Assembly (NCBI GenBank): GCA_965644295.1
Contig: CBFFRP010000370.1
Span: 62,001 to 126,000, forward strand
Source of the DNA: Paraphysomonas bandaiensis
Lineage: Eukaryota; Protista; Chrysophyceae
Length of the DNA: 64,000 bases
Reading direction: 5' to 3'
Part shown: positions 8,517 through 63,014 of the stretch, one piece after another
Position numbering within the stretch: the stretch's first letter is position 1
Layout: each line of letters starts with the position of its first letter
Position numbers and translations under genes: made by a program
Notes under the pieces: generated by a model
The model's input: only the letters and a program-made list of their open reading frames with translations
Databases searched by the model: none
What the model was told of the DNA's origin: nothing

Positions 8517-10190
8517 TCAACTTTCAACTAATAACTCATTCACCCTACCCATCATCTGTGTACGGGCTTCTGCAGGCGATGTCACAGTGCTAACTGAAGC
8601 CAAATCAATAAATAGTGGTTTCATACCTAAGACAGTTTCACTGTTACCTCTGCGGCTGCTGCCCAGTACAGGAAGGAGCGCAACGTGCCTCCACTCAATG
8701 TCATTATGCACAAGACTTTTTTCTGACAGTGTGTCGACAGCTTCCGAAAGTACATTATGCACAGTAACTTCTTTTGTAGTTTTCATGAACGCTTCAAATT
8801 TAGATGTCCATGCATCAAATCGTTCGTCTGCCAGAGCAGAACTCTCCCTCCTCCCCCAATAGAACATGTTAAAATCAAAGGAAATGCTACCATTGCGATG
8901 AATACAGTGAAAGACAAATGGCATAATTAGCGAATCGGAACCGACCACCCTTGTGCGAAGCACATCAACTCCATAGACAGTTTTCCATATGTTGTACTCA
9001 TTCTCACAAGCACTGGCATCATAGAATTTCTTAAGTACGACTAAATGGAAATCCTTAGTTAGCGCGAGGCAAACCTTGCCATCGGCCCCACCGTGAAGCT
9101 GCCGCAGCACTATCAAATAAGTTGGTTCCTGTTGAGGGAGTGTGAGAAAAATTTCCTGGTGTTCGGTAAATGTATTCTCCGGGATAATACCCCAATTCCA
9201 GGTCTCCGCACTCAGAAATATGTATGCTCGTTGCGAGGAGAGGAGCGGTAAACGACGATATTGTGCTCTCATAGACTTCAATATAACGGTTCCAATAAGT
9301 GGAAGCAGTGTTGCGTCATGCCAACTGTACTCTCTACTGCCATGAAGTATTCTTTGTAGTGTGCTTTCCACGGGAAAGTATTCTATTACATTGTCGACTT
9401 TGGGTGGGTTCAGGTCAATTGAGGTAGCAAAAGCGTTTGTGTCAGGAAACCATACTACTCGCCACTTGTCCAGGGTAGTTACAATCCCAAATACTTCGCA
9501 TTGTCCAAAAGAATTGCGTAGATTTGACATGTAGTCGTAAAGTTGTCCAAGCACCTTTAAATTGGACAGCTCCGTTTTTCCAGGTTGTTTCACTTCAATA
9601 ACTGCAATGGGAACACCAGATTGTGTTTTGACAACCCAAATGTTGGACTTGGACTGCTTTTCCTTACCGTCTATCACACACACCATTGTTTTTTGATAAT
9701 GCAGTGACACATCCTGCCTAATATCCAAAAGTGTCAACACATCTAGCATAATATTGCGGACATGATATTCAATCTCTGCCTCATTAAAATAAAATACAGG
9801 CTGTGAAGGGTTGTTCTTAATTAGGAGCAGAAAAATGCTTGGTCCCGACAAATTTCGCACAATGTTCTTAAAGATCACAAAATCCTGCTCTATAAAGCTC
9901 TTCACAGCAGCATGTCCAGGATCACGGGTGGAAGTATTGGTGGAACTTGGCGTTTCTAGAGAACCTAAAGTCAGGCCGTTTAGCCCTCCGTGTAAAAGCC
10001 GTCGAATGGAAACCGCATCGTGCTCAGCAAGCTCTCTTTTCATTTCCGCCAGTTCCTCATCCTTTTTCGCACGTTCCTCCTCCACTTTCGCAAGTTCTCT
10101 TTTCATTTTTGCCAGTTCCTCTTGTAGTTTCATGATCTGTAACTTGACGGGCAGGCTGGCAAGAGGCATCTCTTCTTCTGGAACTTCCAT
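8517..10190 (-). CDS. Crinkler-like protein: N-terminal coiled coil + PD-(D/E)xK (REase-like) domain + atypical kinase domain
   Basis: Intronless; EELAKMKRELAK repeats; NEAEIE...SNIWVV...IAVIEVKQPG...GQLYDYM...FGIVTT; kinase motifs GGADGKV, VVLKK, HNDIEWRH, FIDLA. First ATG at 10190. Confidence 0.7.
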   Translation of the reverse strand: MEVPEEEMPLASLPVKLQIMKLQEELAKMKRELAKVEEERAKKDEELAEMKRELAEHDAVSIRRLLHGGLNGLTLGSLETPSSTNTSTRDPGHAAVKSFIEQDFVIFKNIVRNLSGPSIFLLLIKNNPSQPVFYFNEAEIEYHVRNIMLDVLTLLDIRQDVSLHYQKTMVCVIDGKEKQSKSNIWVVKTQSGVPIAVIEVKQPGKTELSNLKVLGQLYDYMSNLRNSFGQCEVFGIVTTLDKWRVVWFPDTNAFATSIDLNPPKVDNVIEYFPVESTLQRILHGSREYSWHDATLLPLIGTVILKSMRAQYRRLPLLSSQRAYIFLSAETWNWGIIPENTFTEHQEIFLTLPQQEPTYLIVLRQLHGGADGKVCLALTKDFHLVVLKKFYDASACENEYNIWKTVYGVDVLRTRVVGSDSLIMPFVFHCIHRNGSISFDFNMFYWGRRESSALADERFDAWTSKFEAFMKTTKEVTVHNVLSEAVDTLSEKSLVHNDIEWRHVALLPVLGSSRRGNSETVLGMKPLFIDLASVSTVTSPAEARTQMMGRVNELLVES

Positions 10191-11369
10191 TTCACCCACA
10201 GGGAAATTTAAGGAGGGAAGGCGTTTGTTTGATTATGAGGCAGAGAGCCAAACTAACGATACACAAGAACTGTTCACACCTCCATGTACATGCTGCCGGT
10301 CCCCTAATTCAAAACCACAACGACTTTTCACTACACAAATATAAAAACTGGATGTTTTGGAGGGATTTCTGATAAGCATTTCATACAAAACCTTGAAAAC
10401 TGGAAAAAGTATATGTATGTACAGCAGTACTATAGTTTACATGACCAAAACTCTAAATATCCCTGGTTTCGACCACAGAAAACAGTAAAAAGCCCTGATA
10501 ATACCATGTCCATACTATGTCCATGTACATCAAGGTTGCTTCTATCCTGCAATGCTTTCACGATAAGCGAGTTTTGGACACTCTGCTTGTCAATTACTGA
10601 GACAAGCAACTATTGAGTGTGATTACAAGGAATGTCTTTACAGCTATGCTTATTTATTTAACAAGACACCCCCCCCCTCTTTCTCGGGAATAGTGATGCT
10701 GCTACCAAACGATATAGCCGTTAAGTTGTTCTTCACATGCATCGTAACTAGCGATAGTTTAACAAATTAACTAATACTTAAATTAAAAGAAAATAGACAA
10801 CAGGCATAACAAAGTAGGTCATCTTTATCTTCAGATCAGAATTCTTATCCAAAACTGTAAATCGGATACTCTCCATTGCTGCTATCGAAGTCATATATTT
10901 CAATCAGAAAATGTTTGCGCATTTTCTGTTAAACTCTAAACTTTTTTATCTTTTCTCTTCTTCGTTCTTAGCTCATTGGTTCTCTTTATCGATATGTAAA
11001 GGCTTTATGAGTGTTGGAAGTGTAAAAATAATGATTGTGGTTGTTGATGATGTCGAAAAACGGTATACCCAATTTGTGAAGACAAACATGTTTCAGAACT
11101 ACTAGAACATTTCTTTTAATATATAGCATTTACTGAAAGTCTTTTTTATCCTAGTATAGTGATTCTGTTGAATAAAGTAAGTAATAACCTTTTTTATAGA
11201 ATTCCAGCGTTTTTCTTGTGTGCGAAAATAGATATTAGCATTTTGACTGTTGAATTAAGATTACTGGGCTCCGTGAACACCACACTCACTTAGTTAAATT
11301 GGTAATAAATATATCTCCTCATTAATTTCAACCCACCGGATTGACTGGCTTCATCACAGCCAATCAAAA

Positions 11370-18355: not shown

Positions 18356-19689
18356 TCATTGTATGTACGTGTGGCACTCAATAGTGTCAAGGGTGAGAGA
18401 CGAGGAGGTGGGGTCGAAGGTGTTCCATTCGAGACAGTTATAACCAGAGTACTCGGGGGCCTCAGTGTTGGATGAGGAAGAGCTGTGTGCTTCGTAGTAA
18501 CGGCAATCTAATGGACTACTCACCTGGGGCACCCAGGGAGGCGTCACCTGTCTCCTTTCCAGTTTCTGCCAATCTATAAGACCACCTTGTGCAAACCATA
18601 TGTGGTTCTGAATATCCTCCGCACCCCGCCCGCCGCGCACACACCCCAATCTCTGGGTGGGATTCTTTTGAAGGAGACCTCGTATAATACTCTTTGACGG
18701 TTGGGATATATTCTTGGGGAAGACGGGGTCCCGCGACACTATGTTCTCTGCAGTGGCCGAATCACGGCACTGCTGCTTTTCGCTGTCCTCTGGTATCGGG
18801 ACAAAAGCTGATCTCCCAACCAGCATCTCAAATATGAGAACCCCTAAAGCCCAATAATCAACCCCTTTGTCGTACCCCGCGTCGTGAGATAAGGCTTCAG
18901 GGCACAGGTACTCAACATGTCCGCAAAGGGTAAAGGCGCGGTCAGTGAACGTCTTCGCGAATCCCCAGTCAGTTAATTTAAGAAAACCCCGGCTATCAAT
19001 AAGTAAAGTATCAGGGTGAAGTCCGCGATATACCACGTTTTTTCCATGCGCATATTTGAGGGCGGAAAGAACACAGGCAGCATAAAATACTTTCTGCTTG
19101 TCCCCTATGCCGTAGTCGTGGGCGTTGCTGAGCAAGCACGAGAGACTGGCTCCTGGTTCTACGTCAGTGATAAGAAATAAACTATTTTGATTGGAGAGTG
19201 ACCCAATAAGCTTTGTAATAAACGGATGATCCAAACGTTCTAAAAGATCCTTTTCGCGACTCGGAACGTGTTGTTGAAATGTTTCACTGAGTATAGCTTT
19301 GTGATATACATTGAGTGTCACCACTTTCCCTGATGGTGAATGGGCTGCCAATAATTTACAACCAAATCTTCCCGATGCTAAAGTATTGTGAATTTTAAAT
19401 TCTGCAATAGATTCTGCAAAAGTTGTATCTCGTGACCCTATAATAAGACCCTCTTTGTAAGTATCGGCACTGCTATTCGATGCTGAGCAATCTGATTCTG
19501 TTTTATCAAATTCAAATGGACAACAATTCTGGCTAGAGGCTTTTGGTTTGGAAGGTTCGCCGTTAGCTGACTTGGTATCATCTCCAGTGAAACATGACTT
19601 AAGTAACTGTGAAGTAATAGTTATATACAGCAGCTATGAGTACATATTAATAAACTTACAATATCAAACACTCCATCAAACAATGACAT
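18356..19689 (-). CDS. PKA/PKG-like AGC kinase-fold protein, predicted pseudokinase (2 exons)
   Basis: Exon 19689-19660 (MSLFDGVFDI), intron, exon 19606-18356; HPFI, LKLTDWGFAK, TLCGHVEYLCPE, DYWALGVLIFEM, RLG, PPWVP; catalytic loop reads YRGLHPDT. Confidence 0.85.
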
Positions 19690-20460: not shown

Positions 20461-20712
20461 TGTATGTATGTATGTATATACGTATGTATGTATGTATGTA
20501 TGTATGTATGTATGTATGTATGTATGTATGTATGTATGTATGTATGTATGTATGTATGTATGTATGTATGTATGTATGTATGTATGTATGTATGTATGTA
20601 TGTATGTATGTATGTATGTATGTATGTATGTATGTATGTATGTATGTATGTATGTATGTATGTATGTATGTATGTATGTATGTATGTATGTATGTATGTA
20701 TGTATGTATGTA
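20461..20712. repeat. (TATG)n microsatellite, ~250 bp
   Basis: Direct observation. Confidence 0.99.
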
Positions 20713-20790
20713 CTATCAGACACATGGATGTGTATATGAAATAGATGCATATTCCCAGCTCACAACAAACAGAAGAGATTACAAGATAAC

Positions 20791-21546
20791 ATGATCGTGT
20801 ATGTGACAACACAAGCAGGTAAGACGATGACGTTTACTGTTGAACCAAACACACGTATTGGTAACACCCACAAAACTGCTAGACACACTGATAGCATCAC
20901 TGATAGCATCACTGATAGCATGAATGCTCGTATGAGAAGCTATGAAGAAATGAATATGAATGAAGTAGGGAACTATACCTTCACTCTACCTCATTTAATC
21001 ATGAGATTGTGTCGTGATCTTCACTGGGATCCTCATTTTGCAGAGGAGGCAACTGGAGAATATATTCGATTGATTGAAATGAAGTGCGTCAGTCGAGACA
21101 CTGATGGAAAGATTTTATCACCATCACCAATTATCGATCAAGTTTGGCACACTCATATTCTGGATACAAGAGCGTATATGAAAGACACGGAGATTATTCA
21201 TCGGAGAGTAGCTGGTGATCAGCAATTTGAATTTCTGCATCATTCTCCGGATAATGCACAAGATGTAGACGAAAGGAGACGACGCTTAAAAAACACAAAA
21301 AGGGTGTATCGGGCAAGTTATGCGGAGCGTATGGACGAAAAATATTGGGCAGAGAATGCTACTGTGACTTATTTCTCACCTCCGCTATCACTGAAGGAAA
21401 TGGTTCGAAACGAGGAAGGAATTCCGTGCAATCAACAAAGACTCATTTTTAGGGATGTAAATTTGGATGATTCTAGGATGCTGTCCGACTACAATATCAC
21501 TCATGAATCTAGTATTCGCCTAGTCTTGAAGTTGATAGGGTGCTAG
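20791..21546 (+). CDS. Ubiquitin-like protein with an internal GRDP/DUF1399-like insertion; C-terminus LIGC
   Basis: N-terminus [19 protein letters not shown] resembles ubiquitin 1-19; C-terminus [13 protein letters not shown]...[21 protein letters not shown] resembles ubiquitin ~33-76; middle EYIRLI...[19 protein letters not shown]...FLHHSP. Confidence 0.85.
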
Positions 21547-21873
21547 ACTGTATTTAGCACACTTCATATTGATTGGTTCAAACTAGGGCAGGAAATCTGG
21601 GCAATTTTCTACAACGAAGTTTTGGATGATTCCCAGATGCTGTCCGACTACGATATCAGTGATGGGTCTGTTATTATCGTACGCTTTACATTGAGAGGGT
21701 GATAGATGATAGTCAGAACACTTCATATTGTACATTATATGTAGTCCGATTCCTATCATATCATTAGTTCGTGTAACACTGATAACCACAACTGTGTTTT
21801 TCTAGTAACGTCATTATAAGTCAAATACCTTATAGATTTTAATTCCTTACAAACAGCAAAACTCAACACAGAC

Positions 21874-22830
21874 TGCCCCATTCCGAGGGCGTGCCCTAGT
21901 AAAGTGCTAGAGTTGATTAAGCTAAGTAATGTATATATAGTTAATAAATATCAGCGTATTCTTTGTGTGTCGGCGCCAATAAATCTCTAGCTTGATCTAC
22001 ACTCTACACTATACTTGCATAGTTTATATGAAATTACACCCTCAACAAAGTCAGACTCGCACCTTTTCGTGGTGTTCTGGGGGATAAGTACCGGGGAGAT
22101 TCTCTCTGGGAAACGAACATGAGCCGCAAACATAGTCAGCAGATATTCTTCTGCCTACTCATATAGCCGAATGCTTGTGTGGTACAAGGGACACCAATAA
22201 GTGTCACTTGTGTAGACGTCTTTGGGCCCTGACGAATAAACAGGCATCCGGGACAGGGCCCACCTGAAGGGTAACCGGGGTATTGGGCTGCCTGCTGAAG
22301 TCAAGCATCCGAGATGTTCACCTTAAGAACTCAGAGCGGAAGTGGTCGCACCTTGGTGCTTGCGGCAACGCACAAGCAGCTTCCGTAGCGTTAAATAGTA
22401 GGATAAAGAAAGTGAGTACTGATTAGTTACAGGTAGAGATCTAACTAGTTTGTCTACTAGCATTCATCTAGCTACTAAGTTGGTGCAGGTTTTTGACGCC
22501 TGTTGCTAATAATAAGACTTTCAATATGTATGAGATTACAAGAAATCCCGCGCATTCTAGGGGAGGAGTGAGTCAATAGTGAGTAGTGAGTCATGCATGG
22601 TCACGGTCACGAGAATCTGTACGAACATATATAACTCCTGCATAACTATGAGAAATCCCGCGTTATCTAAAAGAAAAAAAGCACGGGTGGGGCGGCAACA
22701 GAATCTGCGCATGATCTATGCGGTCAGCTACCTTGGTACACGGGTAGGCGGGTGGTAGAATCAGTGCTATATCGGTAATATGTGGTGTACCAGCAAGCCT
22801 ACACTATGGTCACGCCCTCGGAATGAGGCA
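21874..22830. mobile_element. MITE family B, opposite orientation, interrupted by a retroposon
   Basis: TIRs TGCCCCATTCCGAGGGCGT / ACGCCCTCGGAATGAGGCA; both halves match the reverse complement of 7990-8502. Confidence 0.75.
22039..22522 (+). mobile_element. Short non-autonomous retroposon (CCCTCAAC family), copy 2, nested in the MITE
   Basis: CCCTCAACAAAGTC...GACGCCTGTTGCTAATAATAAGACTTTC; TSD TATATGAAATTACA / TGTATGAGATTACA, and the site is single-copy in the 8-kb MITE. Confidence 0.8.
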
Positions 22831-28264: not shown

Positions 28265-29463
28265 ATGGCCCGAAATGAGCATTTAGATGATAATATCAGT
28301 TGTTTCCTTCAGTCGATAGGAATCAACTCTGATAATGATACAGATATGCATGATATAGAAAACAAATTAATGTTTCATACTTTAGAAAGTTTAGGTACAT
28401 TATTACATGTTGCTGTGAAGAATAATGCTCGTAGTCAACAACGTGCAGATGATGATCAAGACGAAGATATTCAAGACGTACTGCGGAGGTCTTTTTCATC
28501 GGCTTTACATTATTTTGCGGATAATATCAAGTCCCCACCTGATGAGGATATAAGGGAACCGTACCCTGAGAAGTGGCTGAAAGAATCTTTCCCAGATTCA
28601 GCAAAAGAAGAGGATGGAAGAACGTGGCTGCCTCTGCAGTGGGCCTTGAAAGCGGCTGATAGTAAAACTGATATGCTTGGCGTGGAGGATGCAGAAATTT
28701 TGCTAAAGGAATACCAGTCTGTTGAATTTGCAGTTTCGCCACTATCAATGGCCGTCGCTAAAAGCGAGCCATGCTTGGACGTGGTCCGCTCCATTCTCCA
28801 TCATAACCCTTCTGCAGCAAAGGAGCCTGACCGCGACAAGGCCTATCCTTTCATGTACGCATGCGCCTGGAATAGAAATATAGAGACTGTAGAACTGCTA
28901 CACAGTCAATGTCCCGCCACCGTTGACAAGGCAGACATATACGGGTTCCGTGCACTCCACTACGCTTCCTATGTCGGCTCTCTTGATATGGTACGATACC
29001 TTTTGCGGCTAAACCCACGTGCGGCGCAGCAGCCAAATAGATATGGCGTTCTTCCCCTCAATGCATGTGTAGTAAACCGACTGGGGTCTCTAGAAATGAC
29101 TAGGCTCATATATGAAGCACATCCTCCAGCAGTTCGTGTGGCAGATGAGAATGGTCTTCTCCCATTGCACAAAGCTGCGCAGCATGCATCCATGGAAACC
29201 ATACAGGTAAGTCTTAACATCGACCGCTGTCATACAAAAGACAACAGCTAAACGAAATGTTGTAGTTTTTGTTAGAGGCTTTTCCAGAGGCTGTTAACCT
29301 CACAGATGAGGAAGGACTTCTTCCTCTTCACTATTCGGGTATCCGTGTAGACAAGGACCTAGAAATTCAACAGTTTATTCTGGAGGCCAGTCCCAAGAGT
29401 GCAGCGGACAGTGCGAGGGTAGCTCTAGCAAGTTCTCAAAAGAAAGAATGTGTGATTATGTAA
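28265..29463 (+). CDS. Ankyrin-repeat protein with C-terminal CaaX motif (CVIM), 2 exons
   Basis: GFRALHYA, GVLPLNAC, GLLPLHKA and GLLPLHYS repeats; intron 29207-29265; ends KKECVIM*. Confidence 0.88.
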
Positions 29464-31106: not shown

Positions 31107-34100
31107 ATGCAGGAATATGAAGCATGTAGATACAGCTGCAGTTCATCTGACTCCTCTTTATATTCACCATCACATACATATACATATACTCATGCAATAG
31201 ATAAACTCCCATATATTGAAATGGGAAAACATCTTCAGGGGTTACGTCAATTGATGTTAAAGTGCTGTCGAGAGAAAGAAAAGATGCATGTGGCGATATC
31301 TATTCATACAACTGACCATATGGATTCTACTCATAATATACAGAAAAAACAAGAAGATTTCATAGAAAAAGAGTATGAAAACACTGTGGGATATACACAG
31401 GTGACTCCCCCTGCTCGTGGACCCTTATCAGTACAAGAACTTCTTGCTTATGCTACTCCAAATAAGATTGATGGCATACAACATAGAAATATACCTGTAA
31501 TCTCACCTGATGAAGAAGATATGGGGAATAAAGGGCGTGTAAGGGGTATAGAAGGAAGGTATGGTGGAGAAAAAGAGCTACGTGCATCGGGATACTCCTT
31601 AGCATCTTCACTATCTGTTGGGAATCGAGAGAAGGGAACCGCATTAGCACCGATGTTGGAATGGCGGAGACATGCTCTACTCATGGAGGGTGATAAACTG
31701 ACCCTTGAGGAAGTGGCGGAGAGTCAACAGAATTTACTTGAGCAAATGTATGCTGAGTTAGTGGGTTCTGCCGCAGGAGAAATCTACCTCAGGAGAATAG
31801 TGTGCGCGGTAAGTATGTAAATATCTACTGTATTTACACAATAACCCCACTGTTTATATGGAAACAGATGTTGGCAACGCATTGTGCTGAGAAAAAGCTC
31901 ACGAAAACTTTTCCAACACCGAAATTTTTAAGTACTGAACGAGAACAGTTCTCTGCAGAGACGCAGAAAGACGAATCTGAAACGACGCCGTTATATGAGC
32001 AAATTTCTGAATTACGGCGTGAAATTGACAGTAAAAGTAAACTTTTGTATTCTACTCAGTCAGAACTGAGATCGCTTCAGGAGTCAGATGAGTTATCACG
32101 TCGTGATCGTAACGAAGTGTTGGAGCGTTGCTTATCTGATGTCCGTCGCATGGAGGGGTTAGTATCGAGGTATCGCAGTAGTGCTGATGCATCCGATAAA
32201 GCATTGCATCAAGCTAAACAGGAATGGGAAACAGAAAGAGAATCACTAAGGAGATCCCTACTTTCACTAGAGCAACGAGTAGTGCAGCATACCGAAAAAG
32301 AGAATGAATTTATGGAAAATATTGAGTGTCTCCAATCCAAGTTGGAGAAAATGAGAACGGAGTCTGGTGTTGCTGGATCTGCGTTGTCTGATATGACGGC
32401 GGAGCGAGACTCTTTGCTGGAGGAAGTGTCATCACTTCGATCTGAGTTGGTTGCATTGAGAACAGAGTCTGGTGTTGCTGAATCTACATTGTCTGAAATG
32501 ACAGCAGAGCGGGATTCATTGTTAGCGGAAATGTCATCACTTCAATCCGAGTTGGATGCATTGAGAGCGGAGTCTGGTGTTGCTGGTTCTGCATTGTCTG
32601 AAATGACAGCAGAACGAGATTCTTTGCTGGAGGAAGTGTCATCACTTCGATCTGAGTTGGATGCATTGAGAACGGAGTCTGGTGTTGCTGAATCTGCATT
32701 GTCTGAAATGACAGCAGAGCGGGATTCATTGTTAGCGGATGTGTCATCACTTCGATCTGAGTTGGATGCATTGAGAACGGAGTCTGGTGTTGCTGAATCT
32801 ACATTGTCTGAGGTGACTGCAGAGCGAGATTCTTTGATGGAGGATGTGTCATCACTTCGATCTGAGTTGGATGCATTGAGAACGGAGTCTGGTGTTGCTG
32901 GTTCAGCATTGTCTGAAATGACGGCGGAGCGAGATTCATTGTTAGCGGAAGTGTCATCACTTCGATCTGAGTTGGTTGCATTGAGAACGGAGTCTGGTGT
33001 TGCTGGTTCAGCATTGTCTGAAATGACAGCAGAGCGGGATTCATTGTTAGCGGAAGTGTCATCACTTCGATCCGAGTTGGTTGGATTGAGAACGGAGTCT
33101 GGTGTTGCTGGATCTGCATTGTCTGAAATGACAGCAGGACGAGATTCTTTGCTGGAGGAAGTGTCATCACTTCAATCTGAGTTGGAAGCATTGAGAACGG
33201 AGTCTTGTGTTGCTGGTTCTGCATTGTCTGATATGACGGCGGAGCGCGATTCTTTGTTAGTGGAAGTGTCATCACTTCGATCTGAGTTGGAAGCATTGAG
33301 AACGGAGTCTGGTGTTGCTGGTTCTGCATTGTCTGATATGACGGCGGAGCGAGATTCATTGCTGGAGGATGTGTCATCACTTCGATCTGAGTTGGTTGCA
33401 ATGTTTGAGTCTAAGGAGTCTGTTATATTGTCCTTGGAAGAGCAAATTTTGAAATTGAGAAGTGAAATTGACAGTAAAAGTAAACTTTTGTATTCTACTC
33501 AGTCAGAACTGAGATCGCTTCAGGAGTCAGATGAGTTATCACGTCGTGATCGTAACGAAGTGTTGGAGCGTTGCTTATCTGATGTCCGTCGCATGGAGGG
33601 GTTAGTATCGAGGTATCGCAGTAGTGCTGATGCATCCGATAAAGCATTGCATCAAGCTAAACAGGAATGGGAAACAGAAAGAGAATCACTAAGGAGATCC
33701 CTACTTTCACTAGAGCAACGAGTAGTGCAGCATACCGAAAAAGAGAATGAATTTATGGAAAATATTGAGTGTCTCCAATCCAAGTTGGAGAAAATGAGAA
33801 CGGAGTCTGGTGTTGCTGGATCTGCATTGTCTGAGGTTACTGCAGAGCGAGATTCATTGTTAGCGGATGTGTCATCACTTCGATCTGAGTTGGAAGCATT
33901 GAGAACGGAGTCTGGTGTTGCTGGATCTGCGTTGTCTGATATGACGGCGGAGCGAGACTCTTTGCTGGAGGATGTGTCATCACTTCGATCTGAGTTGGTT
34001 GCATTGAGAACAGAGTCTGGTGTTGCTGAATCTACATTGTCTGATATGGCAGCAGAGCGGGATTCATTGTTAGCGGAAGTGTCATCACTTCGATCCGAGT

Positions 34101-37100
34101 TGGAAGCATTGAGAACGGAGTCTGGTGTTGCTGGATCTGCGTTGTCTGATATGACGGCGGAGCGAGACTCTTTGCTGGAGGATGTGTCATCACTTCGATC
34201 TGAGTTGGTTGCATTGAGAACAGAGTCTGGTGTTGCTGAATCTACATTGTCTGATATGGCAGCAGAGCGGGATTCATTGTTAGCGGAAGTGTCATCACTT
34301 CGATCCGAGTTGGATGCATTGAGAACGGAGTCTGGTGTTGCTGGTTCTGCATTGTCTGAAATGACAGCAGGACGAGATTCTTTGCTGGAGGAAGTGTCAT
34401 CACTTCGTTCTGAGTTGGTTACATTGAGAACGGAGTCTGGTGTTGCTGGATCTACATTGTCTGATATGACAGCAGAGCGGGATTCATTGTTAGCGGAAGT
34501 GTTATCACTTCGATCCGAGTTGGATGCATTGAGAACGGAGTCTGGTGTTGCTGGTTCTGCATTGTCTGAAATGACAGCAGGACGAGATTCTTTGCTGGAG
34601 GAAGTGTCATCACTTCGTTCTGAGTTGGTTACATTGAGAACGGAGTCTGGTGTTGCTGGATCTGCATTGTCTGAAATGACAGCAGAGCGGGATTCATTGT
34701 TAGCGGAAGTGTCATCACTTCGATCCGAGTTGGATGCATTGAGAACGGAGTCTGGTGTTGCTGGTTCAGCATTGTCTGATATGACGGCGGAGCGCGATTC
34801 ATTGTTAGCGGAAGTGTCATCACTTCGATCCGAGTTGGATGCATTGAGAACGGAGTCTGGTGTTGCTGGTTCTGCATTGTCTGATATGACGGCGGAGCGA
34901 GATTCATTGCTGGAGGATGTGTCATCACTTCGTTCTGAGTTGGTTGCATTTAGATCGGAGTCTGGTGTTGCTGAATCTACATTGTCTGAGGTGACTGCAG
35001 AGCGAGATTCTTTGATGGAGGATGTGTCATCACTTCGATCTGAGTTGGTTGGATTGAGAACGGAGTCTGGTGTTGCTGAATCTGCATTGTCTGAGGTTAC
35101 TGTGGAGCGAGATTCATTGTTAACGGAAGTGTCATCACTTCGATCTGAGTTGGATGCATTGAGAACGGAGTCTGGTGTTGCTGGTTCAGCATTGTCTGAT
35201 ATGACAGCAGAGCGGGATTCATTGTTAGCGGAAGTGTCATCACTTCGATCTGAGTTGGATGCATTGAGAACGGAGTCTGGTGTTGCTGGTTCATCATTGT
35301 CTGATATGACGGCGGAGCGCGATTCATTGTTAGCGGAAGTGTCATCACTTCGATCCGAGTTGGATGCATTGAGAACGGAGTCTGGTGTTGCTGGTTCTGC
35401 ATTGTCTGATATGACGGCGGAGCGAGATTCATTGTTAGCGGAAGTGTCATCACTTCGTTCTGAGTTGGTTGCATTTAGATCGGAGTCTGGTGTTGCTGAA
35501 TCTACATTGTCTGAGGTGACTGCAGAGCGAGATTCTTTTCTGGAGGAAGTGTCATCACTTCGATCTGAGTTGGTTGGATTCAGAACGGAGTCTGGTGTTG
35601 CTGAATCTGCATTGTCTGAAATGACAGCAGAGCGGGATTCATTGTTAGCGGAAGTGTCATCACTTCGATCCGAGTTGGATGCATTGAGAACGGAGTCTGG
35701 TGTTGTTGGATCTGCATTGTCTGAAATGACAGCAGGACGAGATTCTTTGCTGGAGGAAGTGTCATCACTTCAATCTGAGTTGGAAGCATTGAGAACGGAG
35801 TCTGGTGTTGCTGAATCTGCATTGTCTGATATGACGGCGGAGCGAGATTCATTGCTGGAGGATGTGTCATCACTTCGATCTGAGTTGGTTGCAATGTTTG
35901 AGTCTAAGGAGTCTGTTATATTGTCCTCGGAAGAGCAAATTTTGAAATTGAGAAGTGAAATTGACAGTAAAAGTAAACTTTTGTATTCTACTCAGTCAGA
36001 ACTGAGATCGCTTCAGGAGTCAGATGAGTTATCACGTCGTGATCGTAACGAAGTGTTGGAGCGATGCTTATCTGATGTCCGTCGCATGGAGGGGTTAGTA
36101 TCGAGGTATCGCAGTAGTGCTGATGCATCCGATAAAGCATTGCATCAAGCTAAACAGGAATGGGAAACAGAAAGAGAATCACTAAGGAGATCCCTACTTT
36201 CACTAGAGCAACGAGTAGTGCAGCATACCGAAAAAGAGAATGAATTTATGGAAAATATTGAGTGTCTCCAATCCAAGTTGGAGAAAATGAGAACGGAGTC
36301 TGGTGTTGCTGAATCTGCATTGTCTGAAATGACTGCAGAGCGAGATTCTTTTCTGGAGGAAGTGTCATCACTTCGATCTGAGTTGGTTGGATTGAGAACG
36401 GAGTCTGGTGTTGCTGGTTCTGCGTTGTCTGAAATGACAGCAGAGCGGGATTCATTGTTAGCGGAAGTGTCATCACTTCGATCCGAGTTGGATGCATTGA
36501 GAACGGAGTCTGGTGTTGTTGGATCTGCATTGTCTGAAATGACAGCAGGACGAGATTCTTTGTTAGTGGAAGTGTCATCACTTCGATCTGAGTTGGAAGC
36601 ATTGAGAACGGAGTCTGGTGTTGCTGGTTCTGCATTGTCTGATATGACGGCGGAGCGAGATTCATTGCTGGAGGATGTGTCATCACTTCGATCTGAGTTG
36701 GTTGCAATGTTTGAGTCTAAGGAGTCTGTTATATTGTCCTCGGAAGAGCAAATTTTGAAATTGAGAAGTGAAATTGACAGTAAAAGTAAACTTTTGTATT
36801 CTACTCAGTCAGAACTGAGATCGCTTCAGGAGTCAGATGAGTTATCACGTCGTGATCGTAACGAAGTGTTGGAGCGATGCTTATCTGATGTCCGTCGCAT
36901 GGAGGGGTTAGTATCGAGGTATCGCAGTAGTGCTGATGCATCCGATAAAGCATTGCATCAAGCTAAACAGGAATGGGAAACAGAAAGAGAATCACTAAGG
37001 AGATCCCTACTTTCACTAGAGCAACGAGTAGTGCAGCATACCGAAAAAGAGAATGAATTTATGGAAAATATTGAGTGTCTCCAATCCAAGTTGGAGAAAA

Positions 37101-38318
37101 TGAGAACGGAGTCTGGTGTTGCTGAATCTGCGTTGTCTGAAATGACTGCAGAGCGAGATTCATTGTTAGCGGAAGTGTCATCACTTCGATCTGAGTTGGA
37201 AGCATTGAGAACGGAGTCTGGTGTTGCTGGTTCTGCGTTGTCTGAAATGACGGCAGAGCGAGATTCATTGCTGGAGGATGTATTGTCGCTTCGGAGTCAT
37301 AATGGAGTGTTAAGAGATCGTGTTGCTGGTCTTAATGAAGAATGTCGTCTATTGAATGATGATATGGAATCAAACTACAAATACTATTCTGAGAAACTTT
37401 CTGCTGCACGGGTACTTTTACAAGAGAAAGAGTCAGCTTTACTCGCACTACATGGGCGGTTACATCACCTCACGGACAGATATCATGTTCTTGTTGGTGA
37501 AGATATTGACTCGTTGCACAGAAGTTCTTCAGTATTGAACGGTGTACTTTCAATTTTGAGTCGCCTTGGAGACATATTTTTACAGAGAAAACATTCTTCC
37601 GTTGCGAAATCTGCTGATCGTGTGTTTTCAATGTTGGACAGTCACACACATTTGGTAAGGGCTGAATACAGAGCGCAGAACATGCGTCTTCAGGAACTCA
37701 AAAATAAATGTATTCTCGTGCATGAGTCTCATCGTGATCACATCACGGAAAAAGTCGATGACATTCTAGCCGGCCTTGTACATGATCTCCAAGGATGCGA
37801 TAGACATTTGAGAGAGCTAAATGGTGTTGGGATTGATGACTGCGTTGAGCGCATGGATATACTCGGGCGTGTCCTGACGCTGCTCAAGAAATGTTCAGTG
37901 GATGTGCAAAATGTTTTAGACCTACGAAAAACGAAGGCACAATCTTTTGCAGCAACAGTGGGAGCTGTTGACCAACACAATAATTCTCAGCAGGAGACAT
38001 ACTTGACTGCAGCTCTGGACCGGGAAAGGATTAAAACTCGAGGGGCTATTAGCTTGGTGCGTCAGCAGCAGTTATGCATACTTACACAAAGGTGAGTGTC
38101 GTCCTTGAGAGTGACGATCCATTGTTGGTAATATTGTTTATAGGCTGCTTCTGCACAAATACAAAGCTAAATTAGGGACAGAGAGATCTTTAGATCACGT
38201 GAAAGAAAATCTGGACTCACTCAATCCTACAATCTTAATTGAGAGGGCAGAGTCTTTAGTATCCGAAATGTCAGAGAGCGTTAATAGAATAAGAAATGCC
38301 GACATTTCTATAGGATAA
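31107..38318 (+). CDS. Giant coiled-coil protein with 35-aa tandem repeats (3 exons: 31107-31808, 31868-38091, 38144-38318)
   Basis: Both introns are GT-AG and phase-compatible; about 36 copies of LRTESGVAGSALSEMTAERDSLLAEVSSLRSELDA interspersed with a repeated 131-aa module. Confidence 0.8.
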
Positions 38319-61225: not shown

Positions 61226-63014
61226 ATGCTACATCACATCATATCATACACTGTCATTCTATCCATATGCATACTTGTATCAGGAGGATGCAGAGACTCC
61301 GGCTCATATAAAACACGCACACGTATCGTATGTATAGCTGCTGTTGAGATGGAGTGGGATTATGCACCTGATTCCAATGAATTTCGGATGGATAAATCGA
61401 ATCTATATGAGGAAATTGCTCAGAATATGCTGATGAAGTCATCCAAGAATTTAGGGAAGATATATCAGAAAGTAATGTATAGAGAGCATGTGTATGATAC
61501 CAGCACAGAGACGTGTAGATGGGAGGCTTCATATCGCATTAATAGTACATACAGTGGGATTATGGGCCCAACGATCAGAGCAGTAGTCGGAGATACGGTA
61601 GTAGTACACTTTAACAATCAGGCTTCTAACGACTATTCACTCGTACCTGACGGATTGACGTTTTCAGGGGTATGACTAGATACAGAAACTGTGATGTGTA
61701 GTAATTTTTTTATCTGTTATGCAGAATATGCAGCAGCTTGTAGGACCTGGGGAGTCTTTCACATATGTGTGGCATGCTACCTCCAATTCTGGCCCATTGA
61801 GAGGACAGGGGTCCACCACTTCATGGCTGTATCGATCGGACAACAGTGAGGACGATGTGCACACCGGATTAGTGGGAGCCATCATTGTAACGGACTCTAG
61901 TTACGTGACTTCTAAGAAGAATAGACAACATGCGCTTCCTTGTGATGCTGATAATGTAGTAGTCCTCATGACGTGTTCCTTTGATGAGTCCCGTAGCGCG
62001 TAAGTTCCCTCAAGTGTGCCATGCCATGTGGTCTGTAACCTTTTGTGCAGAATGCTGGAGAGGAACCTCTTGTCTCATATAGGTGGAGACGGTGACATAT
62101 ACATCGACTTATCCAAGTACCAGAGTGATGAGCAATTTGTAGCGTCCAACACTCGAAATTCCATTAACGGTTACATGTACGGTAACCTGGGAAGCTCTCG
62201 TGGATTCTCTGCCACCACCAACGAGCGATATCGTGTCCATGTTCTCGACTGCGGGGCTGAATCCTCCGACAATATATGGGCTGGTGGACAATCCCTAAAG
62301 TGGTCGTCCATATCCACAGCTTCGTTCATGAATGAGCTACGTCACGAGGAGAAAATTAGAGCTGTAAAGAATATCGAAACCTCCGGTGATGTCGGAGCGC
62401 GGCTTATGACATCATATGTTCAATTCCAGGATCGACAGGAAGGTGAATGGCTGGTTCAGAGTAGTGATAGTGATCTCACTCAGGCTGGAATGATAGCTAT
62501 ATTTGAGCTACTTCCTGCCTCAGAGGTGGGATACTCTTCTCATGACGAAGGTGATGCCAGCGCATGGGCTGAATTTAGTTTCGTCGATGTATGTCTGGGA
62601 GTGGGGGTGCTAGCCCTGATTATTTGGGTGGGCTTCTATATATACAAGGAGCAGAAGGCGATGACCACTTGGCAGCAGCTGCCTGATAACTCTTCCCACA
62701 CTTTCTGCAGCTCTGACAGTGATGTCATGGATTCGACACAGACTGAGCTAGAACAACCTATCGAAACCACTGACGAAGAGTCTTGCCCTCCTCGCCCTCC
62801 CAGCCCTGTCCCTTCTCGCTCTACCCATAACGTAACCCCACCCGCCCCTACATCGCGTCAGTCGTTGCATACACATGAATCGCCTGGGAGGCGGTCAAGC
62901 AGTAGATTGAGTAGGAGTATGCGAGACACAGAGTATAGCAGCGCATCAGCAAGGAGAAAGCGAGCAATGAAGCGACGCGAGTTAAGTGTGTTACAAAATA
63001 TGGACGTTCTCTAG
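61226..63014 (+). CDS. Hephaestin/ceruloplasmin-like two-cupredoxin type I membrane protein lacking copper ligands (3 exons)
   Basis: Signal peptide; IAAVEMEWDYAP; YQKVMYRE; GIMGPTIRAVVGD; VGPGESFTYVW; GLVGAIIV; SINGYMYGNL; TM helix; S/R/P-rich tail. Confidence 0.85.

Follow-up and report, generated by a model that had tools for sequence, protein, structure and literature searches.

We analysed a window of 64,000 nt from the chrysophyte Paraphysomonas bandaiensis (contig CBFFRP010000370.1, forward-strand positions 62,001–126,000), in which an intronless gene encodes a ubiquitin that is interrupted by a second, helical domain and ends in cysteine. The window DNA is eukaryotic in character, with a G + C content of ~40%, sparse open reading frames (ORFs) and long microsatellites. 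The features of the locus are listed below in window coordinates.

20763..21829, + strand: transcript extent from polyA metatranscriptome contigs, with a 5′ untranslated region (UTR) of ~28 nt and a 3′ UTR holding the relic copy in the last line
20791..21546, + strand: intronless coding sequence of 251 aa and its TAG stop, with colinear transcripts and a 97% identical predicted peptide (P0001)
20791..20865, + strand: ubiquitin piece 1, residues 1–25, comprising strands b1–b2 and the first turn of helix 1 (...TRIGN)
20866..20973, + strand: linker, residues 26–61, predicted to be disordered
20886..20921, + strand: 12-nt in-frame tandem repeat CACTGATAGCAT, three units coding for TDSI repeats, inside the linker
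20974..21360, + strand: inserted domain, residues 62–190, predicted all-alpha, UCP032817-like and a distant GRDP/DUF1399 relative
21118..21156, + strand: signature motif S110-P-S-P-I-I-D116-Q-V-W119-H120-T-H122, with columns invariant or nearly so in alignments A1, A2 and A4
21238..21252, + strand: second motif H150-H151-S-P153-D154, with H151 and P153 invariant in A1 and A2, and H151 nearly so in A4
21361..21390, + strand: connector, residues 191–200, including ATVTYF, a stretch conserved in the paralog alignment
21391..21543, + strand: ubiquitin piece 2, residues 201–251, corresponding to ubiquitin 26–76 (helix 1 to strand b5 and the tail)
21541..21543, + strand: TGC codon of the terminal Cys251 at the place of ubiquitin Gly76, directly followed by TAG
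21590..21745, + strand: relic tandem duplicate of the 3′ end of the gene, encoding ...FYNEVLDDSQMLSDYDISDGSVIIVRFTLRG, with 78% DNA identity to 21420–21600

An earlier note, made from the letters alone, had read this ORF as a ubiquitin opened by an insertion at the start of helix 1. Its coordinates and frame proved exact, and the two-piece ubiquitin at 20791–21546 is confirmed. A phmmer search against PDB sequences aligned residues 2–26 with ubiquitin 2–26 and residues 201–251 with ubiquitin 26–76 (E ~1e-13); the two matches run in the same order and meet at ubiquitin residues 25/26, which places the cut after Asn25, within the first turn of helix 1, as the earlier note had it. The C-terminal piece is identical to ubiquitin at 27 of 51 positions and scored 47.2 bits with the Pfam ubiquitin profile PF00240 over residues 200–248 (gathering cutoff 25.4), covering profile positions 23–71 only. 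The N-terminal piece is weak by hidden Markov model score alone (3.7 bits). Aligned without gaps, 12 of its 25 residues are identical to ubiquitin 1–25, and at least 12 identities were reached by none of 500,000 shuffles of the piece; the second-best 25-mer in the six-frame translation of the window had seven. The hairpin is clearer in a paralog (L003) and in the relatives P0119 and P0020, with 14–18 of 25 residues identical to ubiquitin.

The protein ends ...LKLIGC before the stop codon. Cys251 aligns with Gly76, and the C-terminus is Gly-Cys, as had been noted, without the exposed Gly-Gly of ubiquitin-type modifiers. In the tail, Arg72 is replaced by Lys and Arg74 by Ile, and the phmmer alignment showed four further substitutions, L8Q, H68R, K48V and K63H. 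Public samples differ in the copy number of the linker repeat, which ranges from one unit fewer (−12 nt in X5 and X6) to three more (+36 nt in X1 and X4), with the linker length shifting and the frame intact; P0001 has one unit fewer.

In public polyA-selected marine metatranscriptome runs, 89% of the sequence words sampled from the locus were present, and the identical sequence occurred in several independent runs. Contigs of X1/X4 were colinear with the genome over 20763/20772–21358 and 21345–21829/21773, and contig depth fell outside 20763–21829. Such contigs are no formal proof of transcription, yet their ends bracket the ORF as those of a transcription unit would. Splicing out of the middle segment had been named as one finding that would overturn the two-piece reading. 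The polyA transcript contigs contained no joint that removes the insert, and the only joint inside the ORF, from 21264 to 21412, has non-canonical GT..AC ends, does not excise the insert and came only from two runs that are possibly DNA. The insert is likewise retained in P0001, the closest database protein and a predicted peptide from the Paraphysomonas transcriptome MMETSP1103, and in the transcript-derived P0002, which is 59% identical over its full length. A candidate intron from a GT at 20861 to an AG at 21395–21396 was rejected, as by direct count it would disrupt the frame and its joint is absent from the transcripts. The split-ubiquitin gene is a functional, expressed and intronless gene of a Paraphysomonas-like chrysophyte.

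The relic duplicate downstream comprises the last ~130 nt of the gene and the start of its 3′ UTR; it is transcribed within the 3′ UTR, and its Cys codon has changed from TGC to TGA. On the other side of the gene, a (TGTA)63 microsatellite of 98% purity (20461–20712) ends ~50 nt upstream of the transcript start. At 22045–22300, the summed contig depth was very high in four of four runs, up to ~53,000 in X6 where the gene itself had ~300, and variant joints were numerous; this segment probably represents a repeat or mobile element of high copy number.

Three copies of the domain are present in the whole genome (62.6 Mb), all within intact intronless ORFs that share the layout and the Gly-Cys end. 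Besides the window gene, with its 12/25 hairpin, these are L002, which is nearly identical to P0002 (N-terminal hairpin MRLFVKTLKGKVLTLDVEPNIRIGN), and L003 (N-terminal hairpin MQIFAKTLTGKTIPLTVEPSMLVGH). Ratios of nonsynonymous to synonymous substitution (dN/dS), computed pairwise among the three copies by the Nei–Gojobori method, were about 0.33 for the hairpin, where sites are few and the nonsynonymous proportion was below the synonymous one in all three pairs. They were 0.24–0.35 for the helical domain, 0.32–0.50 for the C-terminal ubiquitin half and 1.0–1.7 for the linker. Purifying selection acts on the hairpin, on the helical domain and on the C-terminal half, and the linker is drifting neutrally; given these segment-wise ratios, both ubiquitin pieces and the insert are kept by selection.

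A full-length AlphaFold2 model from a 10-sequence alignment had predicted local distance difference test (pLDDT) values of 86–90 for residues 1–20 and 201–250 and below 50 for the linker (residues 27–62), with an all-helical insert; the N-terminal strands (residues 2–6 and 12–16) had pLDDT 86–89. With Foldseek alone, the match to ubiquitin was confined to the C-terminal 50 residues. VIA-align, which allows discontinuous alignment, superposed 74–76 residues drawn from model positions 1–251 on ubiquitin 1–76 at a root-mean-square deviation of 0.7–1.0 Å (Z 15.7, identity ~50%). In the predicted model, the hairpin thus completes a five-strand beta-grasp from two non-contiguous segments, and the two halves pack together as the earlier note had expected. 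Independent sequence support for the hairpin as part of the fold is its selection and its conservation in the relatives described above.

The inserted domain carries the motif that had been pointed out in it, running to LHHSPD, which is nearly invariant across the family. Nearly invariant positions are Y91, F94, K98, D103, S110, P111, D116, W119, H120, H122, Y129, H151, R165, T169, Y173 and W186. Modelled alone from the 70-sequence alignment A4, the domain reached pLDDT 94 and a predicted template modelling score (pTM) of 0.89, with five main helices and short ones. No solved relative of the insert model was found by Foldseek against the PDB (best E 2.2) or by VIA-align over 48,161 chains (best Z 3.8, noise level), a result that is not proof of a new fold. 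Matches in the ESM Atlas, at template modelling (TM) scores of 0.75–0.84, were “GRDP-like/Rad60-SLD” and “SUMO family protein” clusters, commonest in diatoms, and bacterial “UCP032817-like” clusters (TM 0.75–0.82). Through these clusters PF27765 was identified as UCP032817-like; precomputed PF27765 matches exist for the relatives P0013–15, P0020, P0021 and P0023 and none is recorded for P0001 or P0002. The GRDP-like profile PF07173 scored 21.3–21.9 bits on residues 68–132 of the window protein, just under its gathering cutoff of 22.7 and covering profile positions 78–143 only. It exceeded the cutoff in P0002 (23.4 bits), P0135 (30.0), P0144 (26.5) and P0094 (23.7), and matched 38 of 70 family members at E ≤ 0.01 (best 6.7e-7). 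By these sequence and structure comparisons, the GRDP/DUF1399-like label first given to the insert stands as a distant relationship, and UCP032817-like (PF27765) is the better-fitting label.

The conservation of D116, H120, H122 and H151 suggests a candidate metal site. NCBIfam and PADLOC gave no match on the window protein or its bacterial-looking kin, and a word search restricted to residues 40–200 returned P0001 and P0002 only. The insert has none of the marks of an intein with a HINT fold (first Cys/Ser, terminal His-Asn followed by Cys/Ser/Thr, all-beta structure): it starts THKTARH... and ends ...FSPPLS followed by LKEM, and its model is all-alpha.

A domain-only profile (A2), run against 1.84 billion proteins, matched 12,940 cluster representatives at E ≤ 1e-3, of which 3,778 reached E ≤ 1e-10. 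The family counts thousands of representatives, spread over diatoms, chrysophytes, dinoflagellates, marine metatranscriptomes and bacterial kin. We surveyed the best 150 profile matches together with close kin, 159 sequences that include a few same-organism redundancies. A ubiquitin-like domain (Ubl) is present in 79 of them. It follows the domain as a complete Ubl in 48 of the 79, being ubiquitin-like or better scored as SUMO-like Rad60-SLD (e.g. P0191, P0201); the remainder have a truncated Ubl behind the domain, and in many the missing strands lie at the N-terminus. The 79 Ubl-bearing members end in Gly-Cys in 62 cases, in another residue plus Cys in eight, and in Gly-Gly in one (P0145, with no genuine Ubl end); the SUMO-like Ubls likewise terminate in Gly-Cys. 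Across all 159 sequences, the last residue is Cys in 84. Of the members lacking a Ubl, nine carry a tail rich in Cys or in Gly and Cys, such as ...CGCGGCGGCGGGGCGG, and in P0083 transmembrane-like segments precede the Gly/Cys-rich tail. In some members RING fingers, or weakly scored BTB domains, precede the domain. Since the Gly-Cys terminus is family-wide, a functional role of the terminal cysteine is very likely, and no functional clue available is stronger than the association of the domain with a thiol at the C-terminus.

Two further architectures were seen. P0077 (708 aa, from a marine metagenome/Tara cluster), one of the members split after residue ~37, has ...NLRGGC internally, followed by ~430 residues with two more domain copies. 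The bacterial relatives (L004–L025), all unannotated, have two domain copies and C-terminal transmembrane-like segments and occur in Armatimonadota, Planctomycetota (Paludisphaera), Pseudanabaena, Longimicrobium and many Acinetobacter species. The neighbourhoods in Acinetobacter lwoffii (L010) and Paludisphaera soli (L005) contained fadB/fadA-like genes, a TehB methyltransferase and unannotated ORFs, and no informative operon.

A search for orthologues had been proposed as a check, and relatives with the same split were recovered. The ubiquitin is cut after residue ~25 in the window gene, L002/P0002, L003, P0119 and P0020, after residue ~37 in P0025, P0026, P0077, P0080 and P0175, and after residue ~48 in P0138; in P0134, P0153, P0144 and P0094 the Pfam ubiquitin matches start at profile positions 23–28. 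In a tree of the domain segments, the window gene grouped with its paralogs (Shimodaira–Hasegawa-like approximate likelihood ratio test support 99) and then with P0119, P0144, P0094, P0134, P0153 and P0135 (93). This group, in which the Pfam ubiquitin matches of all members begin at profile positions 23–28, adjoins the split-at-37 group (82), with a joint node at 81.

Two observations bear on how the splits arose. P0175 has ubiquitin 1–47 before the insert and 38–75 after it, so that strand b3 is present twice. The stretch ATVTYF/ATPIYF just after the domain is conserved in the three paralogs and was aligned by MAFFT with the MQIFVK of complete Ubls; it may be a relic of strand b1 of a second ubiquitin. 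From these two observations we infer an ancestor of the form ubiquitin–domain–ubiquitin, in which complementary parts of the two ubiquitins would have been lost with different boundaries in each lineage. Reciprocal loss would be possible because ubiquitin fragments complement each other: in laboratory split-ubiquitin (Nub/Cub), two fragments reassemble into a native-like fold (PMC3317652). An intact ubiquitin–domain–ubiquitin intermediate was not found among the family sequences inspected. No introns are present at the loci of the window gene, its paralogs or P0020 that might bear on a possible origin by intron-mediated domain insertion.

Taken as a whole, the protein is best explained as a two-segment beta-grasp joined to a UCP032817-like domain and ending as a thiol-bearing, non-canonical Ubl, an account that we consider probable by a modest measure. 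The product would not be a canonical modifier activated through a Gly-Gly carboxylate. Its beta-grasp would form a built-in ubiquitin-like handle presenting a flexible, thiol-ended tail, and the helical domain, with D116, H120, H122 and H151, would probably be a metal-binding or catalytic module. This module may act on or with the terminal cysteine, by binding, oxidising or transferring it. Such a specific coupling of domain and tail is a tentative proposal, on balance doubtful, and linkage of the thiol to other partners, through a disulfide or a lipid as in UBL3/MUB, would be a somewhat unlikely outcome. A bolder version seems improbable to us, namely that the domain and the Gly-Cys Ubl make up a self-contained, E1-independent, thiol-based tagging system, in which the metal-bound His-cluster domain would activate, oxidise or transfer the cysteine of its own tail, leading to target linkage or to carriage of metal or sulfur. 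If true, ubiquitin-like chemistry would gain a new class that is widespread in protists and has bacterial kin with Cys-rich tails in place of a Ubl.

The main rival to this account, which we rate as rather unlikely, is that the protein works in the manner of UBL3/MUB, its terminal cysteine being lipidated (S-acylated or prenylated) or redox-bonded to targets and its domain serving as cargo or effector with no domain–tail chemistry. UBL3/MUB proteins share with it a ubiquitin fold without Gly-Gly and a C-terminal cysteine, and they provide the precedent, as their C-terminal cysteine(s) undergo prenylation and form reducing-agent-sensitive linkages to substrates (PMC10511055). The family-wide conservation of the terminal cysteine and the transmembrane-like segments before Gly/Cys-rich tails in some relatives would suit such a role. 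UBL3/MUB proteins are, however, defined by a C-terminal CaaX box, Cys followed by three residues (PMC10511055), whereas cysteine is the very last residue here; they also have a contiguous fold and no UCP032817-like domain, and, apart from the ubiquitin fold, the sequences showed no relationship. The recurrent fusion of one domain to several kinds of Cys-bearing tail suggests, moreover, that the domain itself is tied to the thiol. The protein might instead be a plain integral Ubl protein, as are Rad23, Dsk2 and parkin, whose beta-grasp recruits it to the proteasome or to receptors and whose cysteine has no role. RING and weak BTB domains among the relatives fit this, as does the near-canonical ubiquitin, including L8, I44, H68 and V70, that many of them keep (e.g. 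P0014, P0021). L8 and H68 are altered in the window copy, however, and terminal Cys and Gly-Cys occur at the rates given above, with essentially no Gly-Gly, which exceeds incidental expectation; we regard a plain Ubl protein as quite unlikely.

It is very unlikely that an E1/E2 cascade tolerant of or specialised for Cys76 conjugates the protein through its carboxylate, as a true modifier that would be attached whole to its targets. Arg72 of ubiquitin is linked to E1, and many relatives do keep an LRLRG tail with the Arg72 equivalent. Canonical E1s and deubiquitinases nevertheless require Gly75-Gly76, and the LKLIGC tail of the window copy has lost both arginines. Least credible, and extremely unlikely, is that the insert is removed as an intron or intein-like element to give a small ubiquitin(G76C), or that the ORF represents a dead chimera or an artefact of assembly. 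GT and AG dinucleotides do lie near the junctions, and a domain-interrupted ubiquitin looks chimeric at first sight. Against removal stand the colinear polyA contigs, the non-canonical nature of the sole joint and the all-alpha, non-HINT insert without intein junction residues; against a chimera or artefact stand the three paralogs and distant relatives that keep the frame under purifying selection and the recurrence of the same sequence in several independent runs.

Several points tell against the account of the protein as a two-segment, thiol-ended Ubl. Any function of the split ubiquitin is one that we infer only from sequences and models. Receptor recognition is not assured, because several ubiquitin surface residues are lost in the window copy (L8Q, H68R, K48V, K63H). 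The packing of the hairpin in the model was partly to be expected from sequence alone, because AlphaFold has learned ubiquitin thoroughly; the full-length pTM was only 0.54, and the orientation of the domain relative to the beta-grasp is undefined. The His-cluster metal site is a guess with no solved relative to lean on. The surveyed matches are those nearest to a eukaryote-derived profile, and their terminal-Cys rates may not hold for all 12,940. The tree was a quick maximum-likelihood reconstruction from 77 domain segments and 117 columns with modest support; it placed P0020 and P0138 elsewhere without support, and the splits may have arisen once or several times. A complex prediction between the P0014 domain (residues 10–140) and its own Ubl (152–228) scored 0.02, which is evidence neither way on docking.

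The closest known proteins are the end-to-end fusions of UCP032817-like/GRDP-like domains with ubiquitin or SUMO in protists. They have the same helical domain (30–40% identity, TM 0.82–0.84), the same partner fold and the same Gly-Cys end, but carry the domain N-terminal to a complete Ubl, whereas in the window protein it lies inside the Ubl after residue 25. These fusions, commonest in diatoms, are named automatically “SUMO family protein” or “GRDP-like/Rad60-SLD”, and searches of the literature gave no paper about them, about PF27765/UCP032817 or about a ubiquitin interrupted naturally by a domain. The plant proteins GRDP1 and GRDP2 (DUF1399, PF07173) share the distantly related helical domain with its D-x-x-W-H-x-H motif; unlike the window protein, they have glycine-rich regions and no ubiquitin fold. 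Titles and abstracts of papers on plant GRDPs report phenotypes in growth, stress, ovules and seeds, and none of them names an enzymatic activity of DUF1399.

Laboratory split-ubiquitin, reportedly introduced by Johnsson and Varshavsky in 1994, resembles the window protein in that two ubiquitin fragments make one fold, which here is predicted. The window protein differs in being natural and a single chain with a folded domain inserted, in being cut at 25/26 in the first turn of helix 1, and in having no Gly-Gly for a deubiquitinase read-out. In the relatives split after ~37, the cut falls in roughly the loop that is used in the engineered system. Few eukaryotic proteins are as conserved as ubiquitin, whose way of working is defined by the Gly-Gly terminus; to our knowledge, it is normally fused only end to end. 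Beta-grasp folds in general accept inserts at defined points, often before strand 3 (PMC1949818). In 2Fe-2S ferredoxins, SLBB domains and molybdopterin oxidoreductases, these inserts amount to a few secondary-structure elements, and the families diverged anciently (PMC1949818), whereas the window protein holds a complete, independent domain within a sequence ~50% identical to ubiquitin. A split fold and a G76C terminus at the level of a family are unusual for a Ubl/DUF-domain protein.

In this family, a sequence close to ubiquitin accommodates an entire folded domain, and related proteins have it at three different positions. It would be a natural counterpart of engineered split-ubiquitin and a source of natural data on the points at which the fold can be opened. 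In its ubiquitin- and SUMO-like domains the terminal glycine is exchanged for cysteine, always beside one helical domain without a solved structure. This pairing offers a testable handle on the function of GRDP/DUF1399/UCP032817 domains and on cysteine-based Ubl chemistry beyond UBL3.

Other ORFs in the window encode the following proteins, and no functional link of these three to the split-ubiquitin gene is apparent.

8517–10199, − strand: DUF5898 protein
18356–19351, − strand: protein kinase domain
28265–29251, + strand: ankyrin-repeat protein

Further downstream (31802–38095, + strand), an open frame of 2,097 aa consists of coiled-coil repeats, with seven Cep57_CLD_2-type stretches and GAS and ATG16-like coiled coils. 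The GC skew repeats over 32–36 kb and 40–44 kb, and this period of ~8 kb suggests that the giant coiled-coil gene is duplicated in tandem.

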